From Epiperipatus broadwayi (taxonomy: Eukaryota; Animalia; Onychophora), in NCBI GenBank assembly GCA_028023455.1, contig JAQFVV010000009.1, forward strand, positions 9,920,001 through 9,984,000: DNA of 64,000 bases, written 5' to 3'. Shown one piece after another: positions 1 to 64,000 of the stretch; positions within the stretch are counted from its first letter, which is position 1; every line of letters begins with the position of its first letter. Made by a program: the position numbers and the translations under genes. The notes beneath the pieces are model-generated. The model worked only from the letters and a program-made list of their open reading frames with translations. It was not told the origin of the DNA and made no database searches.

Positions 1-3000
1 TATACTTAATGTCCATGTATCAAATTTATTAATGACCTCATTTATTAAATATCTTTTTTTCTGATACTAGATGCACCTTTCTTTTACAACTAAATAATTT
101 TTACTAAAATTATTACATTCAAACTTAATTTTATTATTAGCTCAATCTATTATAAAAAATAGCATAAACATCTCTGAATCATTTGTTTCTTTTAATGAAT
201 AAATCAAAGAATAAAAAAGAACAAAAAATTAAAATGCAAAATAAGTTTTATTTATGGAAATTTTATATTGAATGTTTATTTTCAGTTTGCAGCAAAATTA
301 GCAGTTATACTTCTTTTAAATGTCAGAAACTTTTCAATTATAATAATAATTATGCAAGTTATTTATAATTTTTTCTTATTCAATAATATCAATTTTTATT
401 TTCTTTTTTCTTAACCCATTGCAACTTACTTTAAACTTCTATCTTATTTTTTGTGTTCATCTGAGAGCTCTTATAATATTGAAAAATTGAAGCCTTATTT
501 GCAAAAGCAATCACATGACTTTAGTAATCTTTCAATGATATTTAAACTTTTTGCTTTTCATTTTCATCTATAAAATATTTTTCTTAAAAACTGCTAAAAA
601 GTATGGAGAGAATGACTGCACTACACAAAAGAACTGTTCCGTTTTGATGAACATAGTACTGTATTGTCTTTAGGGAAAAAATATAAAAACATAAATAAAT
701 TACTTGTCATAATTTTAATCATTGTTTTAATCTTTGAAAATAGTTACACAGTGCAGACTAACTAAGTTTTGATTCTTTCTAAAACTGAATATACTGCGTT
801 GTCATTAAAGAATTTCTCCTAGTTTTTTCTAGTTAAGAAATTTATAATAATTAAAAAAAGATCATAATTTGTATATAAATAAATAAGGTCCTATATAATA
901 GCAAAATACTCAAAATACTTTTCAGATATAGTTAAGCTTTTACATAGTGTTCATATACTGGAAACAAATATCTTTTTAATCCATGAGATATATCATTAAT
1001 AATAAAGTTTCATCCTTCTGTCAATTTTAAGCAAAAAATATTCTTGCTTGAGTAGTTATAGTCATGCAAGAATACTGTCAGTAAAGTATATATGACTAAG
1101 CCATTAAGAATACTTAATCCTCATCATTAGTCTTTGCCAATGATTTTCATGTATCCTTTACTAATATTACAAAATCTTACATTCAGGATTTCTCATTTAC
1201 ACAATTATATATAGTTAATGCTTTTTGATCTTTACTGAATACAGTCATTATCCTTGAAACTACCTATTTTGAAACATTAAGTATTTATTGTTTTAGGGCA
1301 ATTATGAATTGACCAATCAAGTATCAATTTAATCTTAGTTAAACCCAAGACTCCTTTTACAAACTTACAAATCTATTATCTTCCTATCATATATGTTTTA
1401 CCCTTTTCTTAAGTTTTTATTTTAAAAATAAAGAAAAACATATTCCCATTATTTTGTCTATTATATATAAATTCAAGCACATACAGTTAAAAATATTTTG
1501 AAAATTGACACCTTCTACATTAGCTACAACATTCTGGCATATCAAAATGCCATTAAATCATTTTGCAAGTGATAAGCAAATTAAAATAATTTATATCTTT
1601 AAGAATGTGTATAAATTCTTAGCAATAAAAAAAAGTCCTTAAGAATTAATTCAGCAATATAAAATTATGCCATTTAACAGTTTGTCAAAAGTTGGCTTTG
1701 CTGAAATATGTATTAATTAATTACATTAATAGTTATTTCTTATTATTATTATATACATCGTTCCAACATTCAGTGACAATAGCCACATTAGATGACCAAA
1801 TAATAAATTTAAGATAAACACAAAACAAATTAAAAGAGAATTGCAAAAATCTTTTGGAGAGATTTATTTAAGTTACTAACATTTCATATATATATAAATG
1901 CATAAAATTATTATTAAAACCAGAAATAAAGATAGCTACAAGAAAAAATAAAGCAATTCAAGTGTTAATTAATGAAACAACAACAAAAAGCTTAGGATCT
2001 TGTTTTTTTTTTTTAAAAAAAGATCTTGATAGTAAATTACTATAATCAACTAAAAATTCATATTCAGTTTTGTCTTTGTGATAATTCTTTATTTTTGTTA
2101 ATGCTCATTTTGATCCAACAAAAAAGTTTTACTTTTCATTAAGAAGAAAAGTTCATTTATTTCCCATTTTGTACAACAGAAACTATAAAATCTAAAATTA
2201 TATATTTTATATTATTAATTTGGAAAAATTATTGTTACTAATAAATTAAATTTGATAAATAATTCTAAATACATGATTATTGTTATCAGTTGCAGTCAAA
2301 GCAAACTTGTCTACCAGCAATTATAGAATATTCTATTAATAACATTGGACAAAAAGTAACACACTACCAATAATGATGATGATTAATTGCCGTAGCTTGT
2401 TTATAGTCTCCTATTGCAAATGATTTCATTATAGTAGTTATTGTTTGTGCCCTAAAATTCAAATCTAGTGACCTTTCAATTTTTCAAATATATCCCCCAT
2501 CTGCCACAATGGATCTTTATATGAAGATTCATCACAATCACCATCAATTTATACACACTATTTATGGTCTGTAGAAAAAAATTAAGAATTTTTTTTTTAA
2601 AACATCTGACATTTAAAAAAGGACTATTTTGTAAATTTGATATCATAAAATAATAACTTTATGAAAATTACATCATTTGAGAATAGAATGTGGCATTCAT
2701 ACTAAAAAATACAATAAAGTAAAGAATTTATTCATTATACAGCATAATTATGTTTTGATTATAGTTAAAATATGATTATTGTATTATATTTATTTAATTT
2801 TCAACTAGTATCCTTGCAATACAATTAGAGCTGTTATTTATGATATATCCATAATAAAAAAGACTTTCACTGTTAATGGTTAAAAAGAAAAAAAAATTGC
2901 AAGTTTCATTCAGTATAACAATACTTAATCAAAAACACATTTTGATCGCATACAATCACAAAATGCATTAATAATATCTTTTAAAATATATACATCATTA

Positions 3001-3168
3001 GCTAATATATATATATACTCAATCAATATTGGATTCATCTATAGCAAAAATGCTGCCATTATAATTCTGAATTATCTTGGATTAAAAAAAAAAAGAGAGA
3101 ATATAATTTCATGTATTATACAGTTAACAATCAATATGATCAAAAATTATTAAACATAAGTTGAAAAT

Positions 3169-3545
3169 ACTTACTTGCTCAATTTTTAATCAGTAATCTC
3201 AATTTATTTCAGACATATTCAAGATAATGGTTATTTTAGCAAAAAATAATAATAATAATAATAATACAAATTTCATTCAGTACAAAACTAAAAATAAATT
3301 TTGACAATAAATAATAAAGTATATTAATATTAAAAGTAGCTAAAATATATTCACATCAATTTTGGATTAATTTTTATAAAGAATTCTGTCAATGAAATCT
3401 AAATTATTTTCAGTTAAAAAATTGATTTTATGCACTATCAATTTTATATGATCAAATGTTACTAAATATAAATTACAAATATTAGTTACTTACTCAATTT
3501 TAAATTAATAATCTCAAATTCTTTCTGACACATTCAAGATAATGG
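3169..3545. repeat. ~60-bp direct duplication (3169-3230 and 3488-3545)
   Basis: Both copies read ACTTAC..CAATTTT..TAATCTCAA..TTTC.GACA..TTCAAGATAATGG. Each begins with a minus-strand GTAAGT-like motif, but no clean reading frame was found. Confidence 0.6.
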
Positions 3546-4413
3546 CAGCTTTTATCACAAGTATAAAATAATATAATATTGACAAAAAAAAAAAAAATTA
3601 ATCATTTGTGTTATTAAAACTATAGCAATCAACTCTATATTTCTTTACATAATTTTTATTCAATTATAACTTCATTTATATAAAATAAATAAATGAGAAA
3701 ATCATTGCTTGGGGAAAAAAAAATAAGTACTGCAAAAAAAAAAAAAAAATTCAAGTTTTATTGGTTAGATATTACAAAAAAAAAAAAAACATAATAAAAA
3801 AAATGCATTTTAAATTGGACATCATGTTAATATTTTTTTCTACATGCTTTATTTTAATTTAATAAATAATGATTCAGGAAATATTATTCTTTGTCTAGAT
3901 AAAATTAAAAAATGATGGACCATCAATAAAAAATTGTCTTTTTTTAATATATATTAAAAAAATAAATTATAGTTACTGAAATGTTTTATGTGGTATACCT
4001 ACCTATAAGTTAATACCCCCCCCCCACCCTTTTTAAAAAAAAAAAATCAGCGTTTTATATATTTTGAATTTATGATAACAAATTAAATTTTTTTGCCATT
4101 AAAAATCATTATAATTGCTTGTTTTATATGTAAGATTTTTAATTTATGAGGACCAATTGACTGTGCTATTTAGAATAAACCTATATAAGAATTCCCAAGC
4201 AAGCTTATATTTTTTTTTCAGATAGTTACCAATAGCAAGCTAGAGAATCATCTAACAACAATCAATAAATAGGTATTAAATTACCTTAATAAGAGAAGCA
4301 ATTTATAATTCTCTGATTCATTCTAAAACTAAATTACTATGTAGTCATTAAGAATTTATTGAGATTTTTTTCCCCCATTAAGGAGTAAAAATTTTTACTG
4401 ACCTGTTTTTAAA

Positions 4414-4689: not shown

Positions 4690-6437
4690 ACTGCAGGCTG
4701 AATACCATTTTAATGGGATCCTTGTTCTGATTAGAAAATTTTATGAATTTGAACAAAATCACTCAAATAATTATAGAAATAAAATGCTTTAAAAAATGTT
4801 TCTGTACTTATTACTTTAAAATAGATTAGTTATTAGATGATTCACATCATTATTTTTATATTAACATTTTTTTTCAGGATAAACATTTTCTAAAAAATTG
4901 TAAACTTTTTGATTTTATATTTCATATACAGTTGAAAATCAATAACCAAATTTATCTGATTTTATAACAATTTTTTTAATAAATAAATTTCTCTATAAAA
5001 AATTGTAGTCTGTGAATATGTTTCTTGCATCATGAGATATATATAAAAGTGATTGGATATTAAAGAGATTACTGGGTTTATTTTTCTGTTGGCATTTGTT
5101 TTGAGGATAAACAACAAAGAATTGCTAACATTTTACCTTTAAATATGTAGATGAAATTCAATGCTTATTGTTAGTATTTTTTGCAAAGCTAATTCAACTT
5201 TTTTATAAATGAATACTAAGAAAATTGTAATCTTTATGTACATTTTTGCTATGCTATGATAGCTGATCTTATAATTACATATTAAAAAACTAATGCATGG
5301 AATTTTTTTATTGAATCTTTACTTCCATCTTGAATTATTTTAATTAAAATGAAAAAACAATAAATTTACATTACCAGTTTTTTTTATATTCAAACTAATG
5401 ACAAAAGGATGTACCTTTCTATATTAATATTTCTCTATTTTCTATGCATATACTTTCTTAAGGGAATATAATTGCTTTTAAAAATGTGATTACAAATAAA
5501 AATATTATTATTGCTTTCAATTGGCATATCTTTATTAATTAAAATAATAAAATGATAAATAAACTTAAAATTCTTCTATTATTTAATATTCTAACTCAAC
5601 TTCTTTTTAGATCTCTCTCTATTTAATTATGTTTTCAAGATAATTTTGAATTTATGATTTAAAAAAATTATAAAATAGGATTCATTAATTAAAGTTTATA
5701 ATGTAATTTTAAAATTGAGATGCTAGAATAATTAATGTTAGAGGATAGCAAATAATAGCAAAATTTTACCAACAATAATCGAATGTTTATCACTACTCTG
5801 TTGCATTTTTCCCCATATAAAAATTTGTTTATGAAATAAAAATGTAAATTGGCAATGTAAATTGGTCATCATTATTGGCTTTCACATATATTCTCAATGG
5901 AGTATAGAAAATATTAGATAAATTTTTTACTTGAGACTAAAAAAAACTGAAATAATTTTTTTAATATAGTGAACTGTTTTTAATTAAAAATTAAAATTAG
6001 AAGAATTAAGATTGCTTCATTAGTAAAAATAATTTTCCATCATTTTAATAAACTGTTTAAAATTTTTTCTAATTAATTTATTAAATTATAAAAAAATTTA
6101 TGATTTTATTAAATGCAGTAATACAATTTATTTAAAGAATATATTTAAAGAATAAGCTAATGATAATTTTTAACTGTAAATTGTTTAATAATATTAAATT
6201 TTAAAATATTTATGTATTTTTTCACATCTGTGTAACTGCTGTGCCAAGGTAGACATCTATTTTCAAATATAATGAGATCTTTTATAATTTTTATTAGCAA
6301 ATATATTTTATTAGCAAGTATATTTTAAAGCAAAATTAATTGATAATATAAATATATAAACACATAATTATTACTATCCTTATAATATATATATAAAGTT
6401 AATCCCAGAGCATAACGCTATACTGAAATAAATATAC

Positions 6438-6489
6438 AAATATTAATGAAATCACCCACATGGCTATCCATGTGGGTGACTTAATATTT
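6438..6489. repeat. GC-rich perfect 12-bp hairpin TCACCCACATGG-ctat-CCATGTGGGTGA, extended by AAATATTAA/TTAATATTT
   Basis: Direct inspection: arms 6452-6463 and 6468-6479. Confidence 0.8.
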
Positions 6490-7199
6490 ATATATAAAGT
6501 TATATAAATAAAATATATTACAAAGATTATTTATAACTTAGATATAGAATTATATTCTCCAATCTTATAAATGTAATTTGTTTTATTTAAAGATGAGAAT
6601 AAAAAGTTTTATGCATGACAGCATAATTACAAAACTGATCTATTTAAACATCTGCAAAAAATAAATATTCTAAATAAATTTTCTGTGATATATATACATG
6701 TACATACACAGGTGTGAGTTGATATATATTCTTCACCAACATAATGAACAATCACACTATTTATTACTGGAAATAATCTATCATGGTCTGCTTTTTTTTT
6801 TTGTAATTTATATTTATTTAAAAAAAGATTCAGCAGGCTTAATATGTTTATACTTTTGTACATTCCATCATTTGTATAAAAGTTTCTTATATCATATCAA
6901 ACACAAAACCTTGGACCACTGTGGTTATGCTGCTCATTTATAACCAATTTCATGCAAATTGTTATTTTGATCAATCAAATAATAAATACAATAGAATCAA
7001 AATTCCAATCCGAAAAGGAAAAGATCAAGTAAAAATGTCTGTGTAATTTTATAAAAAGATAGTAAGATATTCTGGAAAAACCAATTTTCTCTAGTTAAAA
7101 TTACTAACTTGTCAGCTTAGATGAATAGTAATTTTAACTAGATAAAGTTGGTTTTTATGAAATATCTTAATAACTTTTTACAAAATTGTGCAGACATTG

Positions 7200-7900: not shown

Positions 7901-9219
7901 TCTTATATACTACATTTACACAAAAAAGTCAGTACTTTTTTAAAAAATTATTACTAATAATATGCTTTGTAAAATTAAATTCATTAGTTGTCACCTTTTT
8001 TTTTTCCAATTTTAAGATTTTTTTTTAAATCAAATTTTTAATATTCATTATGTATTTTGAATTATGAGATAATTTAGGAAACAATTGAGTGTGCTAGCCA
8101 AGATAAAACTGTACATTTAAGCAACAACAAAATTAATTAATAAAAAAGTAGAACACTGTTTAGTTTTTAATGCATATATAAAATGAGAGCAAAGTTGAAC
8201 AGTTATTTTATATATATATAAATGATACAAATATTTTAAAATTTACATATAGAAATTAGGATAACAATTTTTTTTTAAGTTTTATACTATAGAGAAAAAG
8301 TACATTATTTATGAACATTGTAATGAAAACTGAAGTTTTAAAAGAAAAGAGCTAATTAAACAAAATTTAATTCAAATTAATATTAATATTAGGGATATTT
8401 TTAAAAATATATAACCTATTTTTTTTTAAAAAATAAAGTTATCACATTTCATGTTGAGTTTTCTCACAAATGAAAATTGAAATACTAAAGAGAAGGAATA
8501 TTAAATTATTACTATAAAGTTTACCATGATTGTTGCCAGATTAACAAAATAGGTATTTACACTAAATGTAATTATTTTATGATTGATAGCAGAAGCAAAT
8601 AAGAATTACAATGAGAACTACAAAATTAAAATTTTGTTTAATAAATTTTTTTCAGATAATGGTTAGGAGAAGCAGTGGATTTTAAAATAACATTTGGCAG
8701 CATCTTATCTTAAGTAGGAAAACTAATCTTACATTTAACCAAATATATTAACAGTCATCTTCCATTTTTTTTATTTGTAATGAATCCCATTCAATTTGGA
8801 TATCCAATATTTGCATCTTTTAGTAAAACATGTACCTATTTTTCAAATCAATGGTCTCTTCAACTTTTCTTCTAACTTCATAAAGTCTGACAATGACAAA
8901 TATTTCATTTAATATCACTGATTTCTCTTTTTAATTCATGAAATCTTTTCACCCAATAAGGATCTTCAGTTGTAAGCAACTAAATAAAAAACACTATTGT
9001 ATGACAGATTTAAACTTGTTAATCCAGTGCTAACTGATGACTTTACAGTCCTTCTGAGACATAAGCCCATAATTTATTTTTGTCTATCATGACTAAAAAT
9101 ATAAAAAGATCATTCACATAAACAGGCAAAAAACTCTCCATATAGTAGTGCCACTTTGTGCTAACCAGAGTAATCAATGGATGCCAGAAGGCTTGTGCAT
9201 AAAATCCCCATCTAGACTC

Positions 9220-9278
9220 ATCCAATATCCTCAGACTAGTTTCTGGCTTGTGGCCTTCGTCAGTGAAGAGCCTTGGAT
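9220..9278 (-). ncRNA. Type I hammerhead ribozyme motif, copy 1
   Basis: Minus strand: ATCCAA-GGCT-CTTCA CTGACGA AGGC-CACAA-GCCA GAAA CTAG TC TGAGG-ATA-TTGGAT. Core CUGANGA/GAAA/GUC present; stem I and a palindromic CTAG stem III can form. Confidence 0.85.
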
Positions 9279-9741
9279 CTGAGAGTACTGCACCTAGATC
9301 TTAGGATCTAAAGCAATCCTCCAACAGCCATCTTTTATCTCCACTTCACTACAAAACTATGAGAATGAAATTAAAAACACAATAATATTTTCAATCTAAG
9401 CTCAATAGCTTATATAGTCATATGGGTCTGAACTCATTTCAGCACCCATACATTTTGGTGACTTTGGCTCTTTAACTACCATAGTCACCATTATCCTATT
9501 AGGCAGGATTGGTGTTAAACCACTAAACATCACATGATCACTATCTCATGCTAGCACATAACTGTTAGTAAATAGGCAAAAACTCTCCATATAGTAGTGC
9601 CACTTTGTGCTAAGCAGAATAATCAATGGATGTCAGAAGGCTTGTGCATAAAATCCCTCATAGTTTTGTAGTGAAGTGGAGATAAAAGGGGGCTACTGGA
9701 GAGTTGCATTAGATCCTAAGATCTAGGTGCAGTGCTTTCAG

Positions 9742-9800
9742 ATCCAAGGCTTCTAACTGACGAAGGTCACAAGCCAGAAACTAGTCTGGGTATATTAGAT
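9742..9800 (+). ncRNA. Type I hammerhead ribozyme motif, copy 2 (proximal stem I degenerate)
   Basis: CTGACGA 9757-9763, AGGTCACAAGCCA, GAAA 9777-9780, CTAGTC 9781-9786. Proximal stem I (TCTAA/TGGGT) pairs poorly. Confidence 0.7.
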
Positions 9801-10185
9801 GAGTAGGCACTAGATAGGGATTTTATGCACAAGCCTTCTGGCATCCATTGATTACTCTGGTTAGCTCAAAGTGGCACTACTATATGGAGAGTTTTTGCCT
9901 GTTTAGTAACAGTTATGTGCTAGCATGAGATGGTGATCATGTGATGTTTAGTGGTTTAACACCAATCCTGCGTAACAGGATAATGGTGGCTATGGTTGTA
10001 AAGAGCCAAAGACACCAAAATGTATGGGTGCTGAATTGAGTTCAGACCCATATGACTATATAAGCTATTGAGCTTAGATTGAAAATATTGTGTTTTCATT
10101 CTCATAGTTTTGTAGTGAAGTGGAGATAAAAGGTGGCTGCTAGAGGGTGGCATTAGATCCTAAGATCTAGGTGCAGTGCTCTCAT

Positions 10186-10244
10186 ATCCAAGGTTCCTCA
10201 CTGACGAAGGCCACAAGCCAGAAACTAGTCTGGGGTTATTGGAT
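10186..10244 (+). ncRNA. Type I hammerhead ribozyme motif, copy 3 (best preserved); predicted cleavage after C10230
   Basis: ATCCAA-GGTT-CCTCA CTGACGA(10201-10207) AGGC-CACAA-GCCA GAAA(10221-10224) CTAG TC TGGGG-TTA-TTGGAT. Confidence 0.88.
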
Positions 10245-11409
10245 GAGTAGGCACTAGATAGGGATTTTATGCAAAAGCCTTCTGGCATCCATTGATTACT
10301 CTGGTTAGCACAAAGTGGCACTACTATATGGAGAGTTTTTGCCTGTTTACTAACAGTTATGTGCTAGCATGAGATGGTGATCATGTGATGTTCAGTGGTT
10401 TAATCATTCACATAGTTATCCTGCCTTCAAAATTACCAATTCATATCTCAATTAAGATTTATAATATATCTGAGAAGAAAGGCAATATTTTTGTCTTGGC
10501 TTCAAACAGAAAGATAAAAAACAGTAAACGAACAATTCTGGCTAATGCATATTGGTGAATAGATCATTCATATGTTTGTTTGCTAAATGAATAATCACAC
10601 ATATAAAGAAATTTCAATATTAAAATTAAAACGTGAATATTTTCATAAGTAAATATTTCATATTAAATGTTGGCATCAAACATTATTTTGATAATAAGAA
10701 AAGTGTTTTTAAGATAAATTTATTAATATAAACAATATTATACATTATACTGCCATTCCATTTCAATTATACATTATGAAATTATAAGTAATTAGTTGGC
10801 AAAACAACCTCATGAAACAATTTGTACAAATAGCTAAACCAGTTTAATACTGGATCATGAGAGATAATCTAATGCATTCAAATATAGTTTAAACCATTTT
10901 TTAAAAATCCTTTTTTTAATATATTACTTTTCTTACTTTCAAAGATTAAAAAAAGCAGCAGGGTATTCAAATTGATCAGAAGAAGAGAAAAAATATAAAG
11001 ATTGTTCTCTGATTGCATAAATATATGTTTAATATTAACAGAATTTATCATTTAATGTCATCTTTATTTTTATATTATTAATGTTTTCATTGCTGATAAC
11101 TGTTTACATATGATTTTTAAAAGGATGGTGATTTTTTATTTATTTTAAAAAAACTATTTCTAATAATATAGCAATTAGATATTTGAATATATTTTTATTT
11201 GCAAACACTAATATAATCTCTTCATCAATGCACTGATTTTAGATGGTTTAAAATATAATATTTACTAATAATGTATATAAAAAATATTTTCTAAATTTTT
11301 CTGTTTATGATAAATGAATATTAAGAAATAATGAATATAATATTCCTCCACACTTTTATTTAATTTGATGAATAATGGACTAAAAAGCAAACAAACAATA
11401 AAAAATTAT

Positions 11410-48352: not shown

Positions 48353-49786
48353 ATGATGCCTTGGCTGATGATTTTAGTCTCCCCCGACCTGTCTATTCCT
48401 CAAGGATCTCCATTGAGTGCCATCCTTTTTATATACTATCTCAACCCCCTATTGAGAGATATAGAAATCTCATTCACCGGAGTATTCATTCCTCACATCA
48501 AAAAATCCTTCAAGTTGTTTGCATATATGGATGATGTCCTCGTAATACTACCATCTCAAAAACATCTCCCAACACTCTACAAGATTTTGGATAAATTTGC
48601 CCGTGATTCACAACTCAAATTTAACCCCAACAAATCTTCATCTTGGAAAATCCTATCGGGAAAGAAAGTCTCATCTAGATTTCTAGCTGAGCCCCAGGAC
48701 TTTCTTGGCTTCCCTATCTCCATGTCTCAAATAGCCATGTCAAAAAAACTACAGAACTCCTTAATCAACTCCACATCCCAGATTATTCAATCCCTTTCCA
48801 GGGTGTATCTCTCCATACAGGGAAAAGTAGCGCTACTGAACATGAAAGTCATGTCCAAGATTGCATACTACCTCCCCATCATGACAGCAACAAAAGCCTT
48901 TACCAAAAAAATCAATAGTCTATGTGCTAAACTCTTTTGGAAAAACAGTACGTCTATAAGCATGACAAGGATGCAATACCATCGCAAATCTAATGGGATG
49001 TCCTTTCACTCCATCCCCTCAATTATCTTTCAAAAATCTCACACATTAATTCATAACCTCTTACAAAAACATGATTCCTTCAATATTTCAGAGGCCGTTC
49101 AACCGATGAACAGACCTCCTCCTCAAAAATGCTGGCTAGACCAGGTTCTCCAGCTTCTCAATCAATTTACATCTAATTTACAAAATCCATATAATACAAA
49201 AATCACCATCTGGGAAGCCCACCATAAAATCAACCCTGAAATCAACACAATGTTACCAATGCTTGGCATCACTAATCATAGAATTACTTCAATATTCAAG
49301 TTCTTAGCATTAGAGCCTAAATTTTTAAACTACCTAGTAAAAGTAAATCTGGGAGCCATGCATACCAACTGGTTCCTCCACCACAAGAGATTTCTTAACA
49401 ACATTGACCCTATCTGCCCAATCTGCAAGAGGCATAATGAGACATTTGACCACATAATTCGCTCATGTACCGGACTTAGTAGTATCAAATTTTTAATTTT
49501 CCAAAATAGTAAAACTGATATTTACAGAATCCTCTCGCTAAAAGAATCTCTACAAAGTAAACAATTTCCAATTATAAGAATGTCAGTATTTCTCACCCAC
49601 TCTATCTGGAATGTGAGATGCAAATTAGTATTCACAAATCCTCCACCAGACCCAAACAGTCTATTCATTTCTCTCTTAAACAAAATCAAAAATAAAGACA
49701 TGATCCCTTCCTCCAAATTTTTATTTGAAGAAACCTGGAATCTATTCCAAATTCCAAAGCCCAATACATTTCCAAATAGCTTATGA
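48353..49786 (+). CDS. Uninterrupted 477-aa C-terminal part of L1/Tx1-like ORF2 (RT subdomains 4-7 plus zinc finger) in a 5'-truncated LINE copy (~48345-49950)
   Basis: IPQGSPLSAILF, FAYMDDV, CPICKRHNETFDHIIRSC; TGA stop; AATAAA near 49934. The initial Met is probably not a true start. Confidence 0.88.
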   Translation: MMPWLMILVSPDLSIPQGSPLSAILFIYYLNPLLRDIEISFTGVFIPHIKKSFKLFAYMDDVLVILPSQKHLPTLYKILDKFARDSQLKFNPNKSSSWKILSGKKVSSRFLAEPQDFLGFPISMSQIAMSKKLQNSLINSTSQIIQSLSRVYLSIQGKVALLNMKVMSKIAYYLPIMTATKAFTKKINSLCAKLFWKNSTSISMTRMQYHRKSNGMSFHSIPSIIFQKSHTLIHNLLQKHDSFNISEAVQPMNRPPPQKCWLDQVLQLLNQFTSNLQNPYNTKITIWEAHHKINPEINTMLPMLGITNHRITSIFKFLALEPKFLNYLVKVNLGAMHTNWFLHHKRFLNNIDPICPICKRHNETFDHIIRSCTGLSSIKFLIFQNSKTDIYRILSLKESLQSKQFPIIRMSVFLTHSIWNVRCKLVFTNPPPDPNSLFISLLNKIKNKDMIPSSKFLFEETWNLFQIPKPNTFPNSL

Positions 49787-63300: not shown

Positions 63301-63601
63301 CATGTAAACATCATTCACATTTTTTAAAAACAGTACATAAATGATTTACATATTCTGTATAAGTATCAGCATAAATAAGTATTCAGTTTTTTATGTTTAA
63401 GCTTTAAAGCACTTGAAAACTTTCTGGTTTTGAATGAAATATACATATGCATTGTCAAGAGTTGATTAATAAACTTTAAAAACATTGTGTGGTAAATCTG
63501 ATTTAATATTATACACATTAAATGGAAGGATTAATCAACATATTTATTGAGTTTATTAAAATCAGAACTAAGTCATTTATTTAATAATATTTATCATGAA
63601 A

Positions 63602-64000
63602 AAATAGGCAAAACTCTCTCCATACAGTAGTGCCACTCAAAGCAAGACAGAGTAATTAATGGATGCCAGAAGGCTTGTGCGTAAAATCCCTATCTAGTGC
63701 CTACTCATCCACTATCCCCAGACAAGTTTCTGGCTTGTAGCCTTCGTCAGTAAGGAGCCTTGGATTTGATAGCATTGCACCTAGATCTTAAGATCTAATG
63801 CAACCCTCCAGCAGCCACCTTTTATCTCTACATAACTATAGAACTATGAGAATAAAATTGAAAACATACAAATACTTTCAATCTAAGCTCAATAGCTAAT
63901 GCCTAATAGGAAGGTGGCTGTGATTATAAAAGAACCAAAGACATTAAAATGTATAGGTGCTGAACTGAATTCAGACCCATATGACTATATAAAGCTATTG
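63602..64000. mobile_element. Second retrozyme-like insertion (sense on minus to ~63897, then inverted; runs off the window)
   Basis: Homologous to the 9121-10402 unit over ~295 bp, followed by an inverted segment from 63901. Confidence 0.85.
63707..63765 (-). ncRNA. Type I hammerhead motif, copy 4 (stem III palindrome mutated CTAG to CTTG)
   Basis: Minus: ATCCAAGGCTCCTTA CTGACGA AGGC-TACAA-GCCA GAAA CTTG TC TGGGGATAGTGGAT. Confidence 0.75.

Follow-up and report, generated by a model that had tools for sequence, protein, structure and literature searches.

How did nearly three copies of a short, hammerhead-bearing unit come to lie between two copies of a perfect direct repeat, and did they arrive together? 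The question is raised by positions 9109–10414 of a 64-kb stretch of Epiperipatus broadwayi DNA (hereafter the window, meaning the whole of the stretch analysed). A sequence-only reading had described the locus as a head-to-tail retrozyme multimer, inserted as one event between target-site duplications. The anatomy of the insertion, its recurrence in the genome and its likeness to known elements are considered in turn below, followed by the explanations that compete to account for them.

Anatomy of the insertion

The boundaries and the composition of the insertion were much as had been described. The 12-bp direct repeat ATCATTCACATA is perfect (9109–9120 and 10403–10414, the pair being 100% identical), with the final 2 nt (TA) of the left copy and the initial A of the right copy assignable equally to the ends of the element. 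The 1282 bp of insertion amount to ~2.9 unit-equivalents of a repeat unit 444–449 bp in length, bearing out the claim of about 2.9 copies of a ~445-bp unit, and the longest ORF is only 65 aa, as befits a sequence that had been called non-coding.

It is in the layout that the earlier description failed. TRF reported no tandem array at 9109–10414, which was the first sign that a head-to-tail arrangement had been misread; the insertion consists, rather, of two opposed arms placed head to head, with two differing fixed outer ends. Arm A, delimited by inverted-repeat matches and by alignment to the unit, occupies the minus strand at 9121–9658 and holds ~1.2 units (in the sense direction, unit 160–444 and then 1–249). 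At 9121 it finishes in an outer (3′) end without a tail, the sharp ‘A end’ of the family, ...GAGAGTTTTTGCCTGTTTA, at unit position ~249. Arm B, recognised from a direct-repeat match (94%) and alignment to the unit, runs along the plus strand at 9657–10402, holds ~1.68 units (unit 1–444 and then 1–303) and finishes at unit position ~303 in the family ‘B end’, ...GTGATGTTCAGTGGTTTAA. A one-sided ‘tail’ (unit 250–303; 10350–10402, plus strand) is present on this outer end and absent from that of arm A. The arms overlap by 2 nt at the inner, head-to-head junction (9657–9658), a CT microhomology at which arm A ends at unit 160 and arm B begins at unit 1. With unit 160 set against unit 1, the junction is not the centre of a symmetric palindrome.

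Identity among the units of the insertion is 89–98% (94% within the plus arm), and by this measure of divergence the copy is old; it is probably dead. Left and right flank belong, in colinear order, to a single older repeat, paralogues of which run uninterrupted across the insertion site. There was no separate target duplication around the inner arm of the window insertion, and no rare family variant was common to its two arms. For want of such a shared variant, the single-event origin of this particular copy rests on its duplication together with the pattern seen in the family.

A dispersed family with two fixed ends

A dispersed, non-coding family of type I hammerhead repeats had been postulated from the one locus, and the 5.6-Gb genome does hold such a family, with 3422 candidates on first look. 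Thirty family loci, of which 25 were fully contained, were sampled by best match to the full unit, and a sample so chosen is not unbiased. Both arms were present in 23/25 fully contained loci, and a direct repeat of 7–15 bp surrounded the entire composite in 20/25. Copies lacking target-site duplications had been named as the finding that would tell against retrotransposition; most of the sampled loci do have the duplication, and its recurrence around the composite, with the continuity of the flanks in paralogues, upholds the claim of one TSD-flanked event.

Insertions contained 1–6 units, with one motif per unit, and the units within one locus belonged to a single subfamily. Inner junctions and arm lengths varied at each locus, the arms being unequal. 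The outer ends followed a strict rule: in all 23 two-arm loci, one end lay at unit 230–260 and the other at 288–307, never two alike, a pairing expected with a probability of 0.5^23 = 1e-7 if end types were combined at random. In rounded terms, the two positions are ~249 and ~288–303. The one-sided tail measured ~40–55 nt across the family. The arm bearing it may be very short (38–300 bp in seven loci), whereas the other arm was always at least 538 bp (Wilcoxon p = 0.012).

Rare family variants were common to both arms at several loci (five at L007, five at L010, four at L016 and four at L026), indicating one template per insertion. The inner junctions are asymmetric, as exemplified by unit 160 against unit 1, which excludes both a snap-back and an artefact of palindromic origin. 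Inspection of the sampled loci by eye revealed no convincing cluster of inner 5′ ends at the predicted cleavage site (unit 130/131). The family was found at very high word depth in four runs, represented by Logan contigs of unrecorded molecule type that come without end or strand information. In organisms A, B and E, very high depth was seen for the family but not for the flanks, again in Logan contigs, none of them on record as RNA.

The hammerhead motif

Three hammerheads had been reported in the insertion. All three cores are present, CUGACGA ... GAAA ... GUC being intact in each; however, because the arms are opposed, one of the three is on the minus strand (9263–9234), and the middle one is without helix I pairing. 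The motif of arm A (9234–9263, minus strand; supported by descriptor match, fold and alignment) has a helix I of 6 bp, a helix II of 3 bp plus A.A, and a helix III made up of A-U and the palindromic loop CUAG, with a predicted cut after base 9234 on the minus strand. That of the first plus unit (9757–9786) retains an intact core (9757–9763; C17 at 9786) and fails the descriptor; its helix I has decayed, with unit positions 96, 99, 135 and 141 privately changed, and a C-to-U change in helix II makes a G-U pair. The motif of the second plus unit (10201–10230) combines an intact core with a helix I of 5 bp, and for this right-hand copy the cut predicted after C10230 had been placed at the right position. 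Descent of the middle unit from another subfamily was considered and rejected: in other copies the four minor variants that it carries occur without linkage, and so look like private or recurrent mutations.

Across 103 family copies, each core position was 89–100% conserved, with N7 divided between T and C at 54/46, and the common family polymorphisms within the motif were confined to N7, position 10.1 and loop 1. Helix I of the motif comprises 6 bp and, beyond an internal loop, another 5 bp. A structural descriptor demanding at least 5 bp in helix I and at least 3 bp in helix II gave three matches in the 64-kb window (two in this insertion and one in a second family copy at 63721–63750) and 0 in 200 Markov-simulated windows. 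An unconstrained MFE fold of 10180–10250 recovered helices I and II, and the predicted fold of the cut-to-cut unit RNA is compact (−146.8 kcal/mol, z = −4.3).

A search of Rfam, suggested along with the sequence-only reading, returned no hammerhead at the motif sites, neither in the whole window at gathering score nor, at E≤10, in stretches of 1751 nt and 81 nt; a further five loci of the family, searched at E≤10, likewise matched no hammerhead (RF00163 or clan). A weak Hammerhead_HH10 match in the AT-rich left flank (8922–9000) reached 24 bits, where the gathering score is 75, and was taken as chance. A string search of the literature with the hammerhead sequence also gave no match. On the strength of its conserved core and helices, the motif is classified, as a prediction from sequence, as a type I hammerhead with helix I open.

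In having a helix I of 6 bp plus an internal loop and a helix II of ~4 pairs, it resembles the hammerheads of amphibian satellite 2 and of the axolotl retrozymes (HHR_Amex1/2) and canonical metazoan type I hammerheads (PMC4209133, PMC7229834), and in HHR_Amex2, too, the basal pair of helix II is mismatched, as U.U (PMC4209133, PMC7229834). Helix III, with one base pair and a palindromic loop, is of the dimer type: as in dimer-type hammerheads, a single A-U is capped by the palindromic tetraloop CUAG, giving an ACUAGU that could pair between two copies. With helix III so reduced and palindromic, the hammerhead would need a partner copy. The family differs from dimer-type hammerheads at 10.1–11.1 (unit positions 108/120), where 82% of copies have A.A and 18% have U-A in place of the usually conserved G10.1-C11.1 pair, and in leaving Rfam Hammerhead_1 unmatched; its cleavage is a predicted one.

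Resemblance to retrozymes and Penelope-like elements

Metazoan non-LTR retrozymes (Cervera and de la Pena 2020, PMC7229834; PMC7761336) are the nearest counterpart of the unit itself. Like them, the family has a non-coding, AT-rich unit of a few hundred nt, within the range of 170–450 nt, with one type I hammerhead motif per unit; its copies are dispersed, comprise more than one unit without LTRs, and have target duplications >4 bp and a predicted compact RNA fold. The arrangement is another matter. Published retrozymes are tandem repeats (PMC7229834, PMC7761336), whereas the standard insertion of this family is a two-arm foldback, and a text search of PMC7229834 and PMC7761336 found inverted arms, fixed ends and tail unmentioned in their text. 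Published retrozyme families are, in addition, defined by abundant unit-length RNA, both linear and circular; the present family is likened to them on the structure of its genomic copies.

For the arrangement, the counterpart is found among Penelope-like elements (PLEs), whose insertion footprint was reportedly described by Evgen'ev and Arkhipova in 2005. PLE insertions show partial tandems, an adjacent inverted 5′-truncated copy and a 30–40-bp tail at one end (Craig et al. 2021, PMC8557442). The insertions of the family likewise display a partial tandem, an adjacent inverted 5′-truncated copy and a tail at one end only; in both, the target duplications are variable and the repeated portion contains a hammerhead. 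The tail of the family, at ~40–55 nt, is longer than that published for PLEs (PMC8557442), and the unit differs from a PLE in being only ~445 nt long, without an RT or GIY-YIG ORF.

An autonomous PLE at L063, in the same genome, bears this footprint as well. The element, whose 875-aa ORF contains a match to GIY-YIG endonuclease, has a partial tandem (pLTR), an 11-bp duplication and an inverted arm that alone carries a tail, 55 nt in length. Its 3′ region, examined by eye, contains an apparent minimal hammerhead with a swapped core pair, and thus of a type differing from the family motif with its canonical C3-G8. A partner was sought by BLAST and with an nhmmer profile of 42 units against 38 GIY-YIG/PLE loci. 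Within these loci the unit matched only neighbouring family copies and nothing at the PLE 3′ ends, a further difference from PLEs being that it has no sequence in common with the 38 sampled, although 38 loci are a small PLE sample against the >10,000 GIY-YIG candidates in the genome.

Origin of the insertion

The recurring footprint, and its presence in the L063 PLE, are best read as the mark of a non-autonomous retrozyme that entered in a single event through reverse transcription of the PLE type. The insertion is probably that of a non-coding ~445-nt hammerhead non-LTR retrozyme, made in trans by the TPRT machinery of a PLE. The recurrence of one structure with variable details also bears on the other ways in which such a locus might have formed.

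One of these is that a LINE reverse transcriptase copied the element RNA, with the inverted arm produced by L1-style twin priming. In that process, reportedly set out by Ostertag and Kazazian in 2001, two cDNAs are primed from both nicked strands and joined at a microhomology, leaving an inverted 5′ part within one duplication. The likeness to the family extends to the priming of two cDNAs at one target, the microhomology join and the single target duplication, which is of similar length; microhomology is present at the inner junction and at the insertion ends, and the window contains a LINE-type RT fragment (an ORF with RVT_1 and zf-RVT at 48353–49786). However, both ends of the insertion lack poly(A) and simple-repeat tails, and both arms in the family can exceed unit length. 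Each two-arm insertion combines the two fixed types of outer end (23/23), whereas the second primer of twin priming anneals at variable internal sites. The footprint of the L063 PLE, inclusive of its ~55-nt one-sided tail, also favours a PLE, and a LINE origin is improbable.

The original notion of a head-to-tail multimer, made as rolling-circle cDNA of a circular RNA and inserted in one step, could be kept if the inversion were a later rearrangement of the DNA. Partial tandems within each arm and the real 12-bp duplication around the composite would agree with this, and the model published for retrozymes invokes rolling-circle copying of circRNA (PMC7229834, PMC7761336). Yet a later inversion would not recur at 23/25 independent loci with one same pair of outer ends, and both outer ends are sense 3′ ends, a result that inversion of a head-to-tail array cannot give while the duplication stays; the explanation is very unlikely to be correct. 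Nor is much probability left for an origin at the level of DNA or by artefact, whether as a foldback/TIR DNA transposon, as one independent insertion nested within another, as a satellite palindrome or as a chimera of the assembly. Long inverted arms do look like foldback elements, and long-read assemblies do contain palindromic chimeras. Cut-and-paste copies, though, would have one structure, whereas here arm lengths and inner junctions differ from locus to locus and the arms are unequal; the termini are asymmetric (unit 249 vs 303), and the duplications measure anything between 7 and 15 bp. A chimera is at odds with junctions that are not symmetric palindrome centres and with window arms that differ by 2–11%. 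Nesting is opposed by an inner arm with no duplication of its own, and the rare variants common to both arms link the two at several loci.

For the course of a PLE-mediated insertion, we infer an RNA template, an order of priming, ribozyme activity and a responsible PLE. Staggered nicks ~12 bp apart would give rise to the duplication ATCATTCACATA, and each nick would prime one cDNA on element RNA longer than one unit, which may be multimeric or circular. One cDNA would begin at unit ~249; the other would begin at ~303, which lies ~50 nt downstream of the first start, and so leave the one-sided tail. Both would extend inward, over 1.2 and 1.7 units, and their joining at the 2-nt microhomology would create the head-to-head arms. 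The hammerhead, for its part, would release unit-length RNAs from multimeric transcripts, its cut falling 119 nt upstream of the A end. A tentative generalisation from the strict pairing of the two end types (23/23), which may well prove wrong, is that PLE integration starts two cDNAs at two defined template positions ~50 nt apart on circular or multimeric RNA, the tail being the interval between the starts.

Significance

The family is a clean further example of a known footprint and no new class of element. PLEs have been proposed as mobilisers of non-LTR retrozymes from co-occurrence and from similarity to PLE terminal repeats (PMC7761336; bioRxiv 10.64898/2026.07.22.740005). What the family of E. 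broadwayi adds is a different kind of evidence for PLE dependence of animal retrozymes, namely a full integration footprint, shared with an autonomous PLE from the same genome. It offers, besides, a small, high-copy substrate for studying the origin of the inverted arms and the one-sided tail, which are called unexplained in the PLE literature. Were the two-start reading true, this 445-nt family would be a minimal natural substrate with all the cis signals for PLE integration, and would provide the footprint proof that PLEs mobilise animal retrozymes, lacking in PMC7229834 and PMC7761336; the PLE ‘tail’ would then be explained simply as the spacing between two cDNA starts.

Layout of the insertion

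The insertion occupies 9121–10402 (1282 bp) and is flanked on both sides by perfect 12-bp copies of ATCATTCACATA, at 9109–9120 and 10403–10414, confirming the target duplication reported in the sequence-only reading. It is composed of a unit of ~444–449 bp whose non-coding character is likewise borne out, the longest ORF in the block being 65 aa. The orientation, taken to be that of a single head-to-tail multimer, had been misread: 2.9 head-to-tail copies are ruled out by the opposed orientations of two arms and by the fact that Tandem Repeats Finder reported no array at 9109–10414. Repeat finder, alignment of pieces and profile search agreed on a minus-strand arm at 9121–9658 (in the sense direction, unit positions 160–444, then 1–249) and a plus-strand arm at 9657–10402 (unit positions 1–444, then 1–303). 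Their junction is head to head, at 9657/9658, with a 2-nt overlap, so that in the sense direction each outer end is a 3′ end; along the unit, the plus arm extends ~54 nt beyond the point reached by the minus arm.

The window is AT-rich (GC 22–38% across 4-kb bins). The left flank (8758–9107) and right flank (10403–10600) come from a single dispersed repeat of greater age, for which a first look gave ~1800 (left) and ~990 (right) candidates at 72–78% identity. Once the block and one 12-mer copy are removed, the flanks are colinear, at ~75% identity, with paralogues (L071–L073) that run unbroken across the insertion site, where the alignment near the 12-mer is too diverged for the exact target to show. 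Units within the insertion are 89–98% alike, differences between them are mostly private and the arms share no family-rare variant; the insertion is thus fairly old.

The family across the genome

A first look at the 5.6-Gb genome gave 3422 candidates for the unit, which was mapped on 30 loci; counts are based on the 25 lying wholly inside the fetched sequence. Both orientations were present in 23/25 loci, and all 23 two-arm loci had one outer end at unit 230–260 (mostly exactly 249, ...GCCTGTTTA) and the other at unit 288–307 (...GTTTAGTGGTTTAA). Pairs of same-type ends were found in 0/23 two-arm loci (1e-7 if pairing were random). A direct repeat of 7–15 bp, most commonly 12–13 bp, surrounded the whole composite in 20/25 loci, frequently overlapping the element end by 1–7 nt. 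The arm ending at ~249 was at least 538 bp long at every locus, and the arm carrying the one-sided tail was as short as 38 bp.

Snap-back hairpins, palindromic chimeras of assembly and cut-and-paste foldback transposons are all excluded by the inner junctions, which were asymmetric and different at every locus. At several loci both arms had in common variants otherwise rare in the family, and units within one locus belonged to one subfamily, so both arms derive from a single template source.

The family recurs with the same layout at 63600–64000, in a second insertion that runs past the window end; the outer end of its minus arm (63600–63850, then 63860–63900) is at unit ~249, and its plus arm starts at 63900. 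Elsewhere, locus L067 carries a miniature two-arm insertion of this family (127–353), whose arms measure just 129 and 102 bp and whose outer ends, at unit ~295 and ~259, are of the two usual types, as well as an older, 69% identical relative (1626–1801).

The hammerhead motif

Each unit contains CUGACGA ... GAAA ... GUC. Helix I has 6 bp followed, beyond an internal loop, by another 5 bp; helix II is GGC/GCC closed by A.A; and helix III is a single A-U pair with CUAG as its palindromic loop. This architecture is shared with the ‘canonical metazoan type I’ hammerhead, a design thought to act as a dimer (PMC4209133; PMC7229834). A search of the window with a structural descriptor of the motif gave three hits (10201–10230, plus strand; 9263–9234, minus strand; and, in a further family copy, 63750–63721, minus strand), versus none in 200 simulated windows. 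The three hammerheads originally described in the block are real as cores, although one copy is on the minus strand and the middle one (core 9757–9763) has lost helix I pairing. In the second insertion, the helix III loop is CUUG, which is not palindromic. Unit RNA from one predicted cut to the next (9787–10230) has a compact predicted fold (−146.8 kcal/mol, z = −4.3).

The Rfam search put forward as a check on the motif left it unrecognised at every threshold and search size tried; the G10.1–C11.1 pair usual in hammerheads is missing from it. A weak Rfam match to Hammerhead_HH10 in the AT-rich flank (8922–9000, minus strand; E=0.048, 24.4 bits where the gathering score is 75) has most core letters mismatched and is probably due to chance.

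Among 103 family copies the core was 89–100% conserved, and common polymorphisms within the motif were confined to loop 1, N7 (a free position, T/C 54/46) and position 10.1 (A 82%, T 18%, the facing A being invariant). Since variation among copies is mostly neutral decay, this pattern only weakly suggests that the family's source copies retained the motif.

In four sequencing runs (contigs of unknown molecule type) the family was at very high depth in three organisms, with depth peaking around the hammerhead. Summed word depth over the hammerhead and ~60 nt after it was several-fold above the rest of the unit in 4/4 runs (organisms A, B and E), the raised stretches being 9136–9253, 9785–9843 and 10198–10256. 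This module is either common to other families or better conserved.

Penelope-like elements and the mode of insertion

More than 10,000 GIY-YIG candidates were found in the genome, some within open frames of 800–901 aa. Four loci (L061–L064) are Penelope-like elements (PLEs) with open frames of 871–901 aa; L061 and L063 are 97% alike, and L062 represents a diverged family. The autonomous copy at L063 (2220–7087; G000:C135:332219–337086; 875-aa ORF) has an inverted arm (2220–2806), a partial tandem repeat or pLTR (2807–3936, repeated at 5951–7087), a 55-nt tail extension on the inverted arm only and an 11-bp target duplication, TAATAAATCAA. Some 300 nt downstream of its ORF lies UUGAAAA ... GACUAU/AUAGUC ... 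GAAAC, which, judged by eye, resembles a minimal hammerhead having a U3–A8 core. The window also carries a LINE-type reverse transcriptase fragment (48353–49786, plus strand; 477-aa ORF, RVT_1 E=4e-16, zf-RVT weak).

Mobilisation of animal retrozymes by PLEs has been proposed from their co-occurrence and from the resemblance of retrozymes to PLE terminal repeats (PMC7761336; bioRxiv 10.64898/2026.07.22.740005); a text search of the papers making this proposal found no mention of retrozymes with a tail, fixed ends or inverted arms. No sequence was common to the unit and 38 sampled PLE loci, among which a partner PLE was not found. The layout of L063 matches the published PLE footprint, which comprises partial tandems, an adjacent inverted 5′-truncated copy and a 30–40-bp tail at one end (PMC8557442), and the short hammerhead family has the same footprint as both L063 and published PLEs. 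Insertion of a retrozyme as one event, as first proposed, holds, but the event is a PLE-style two-arm insertion rather than that of a head-to-tail multimer, and the window insertion belongs to an already known kind of element.
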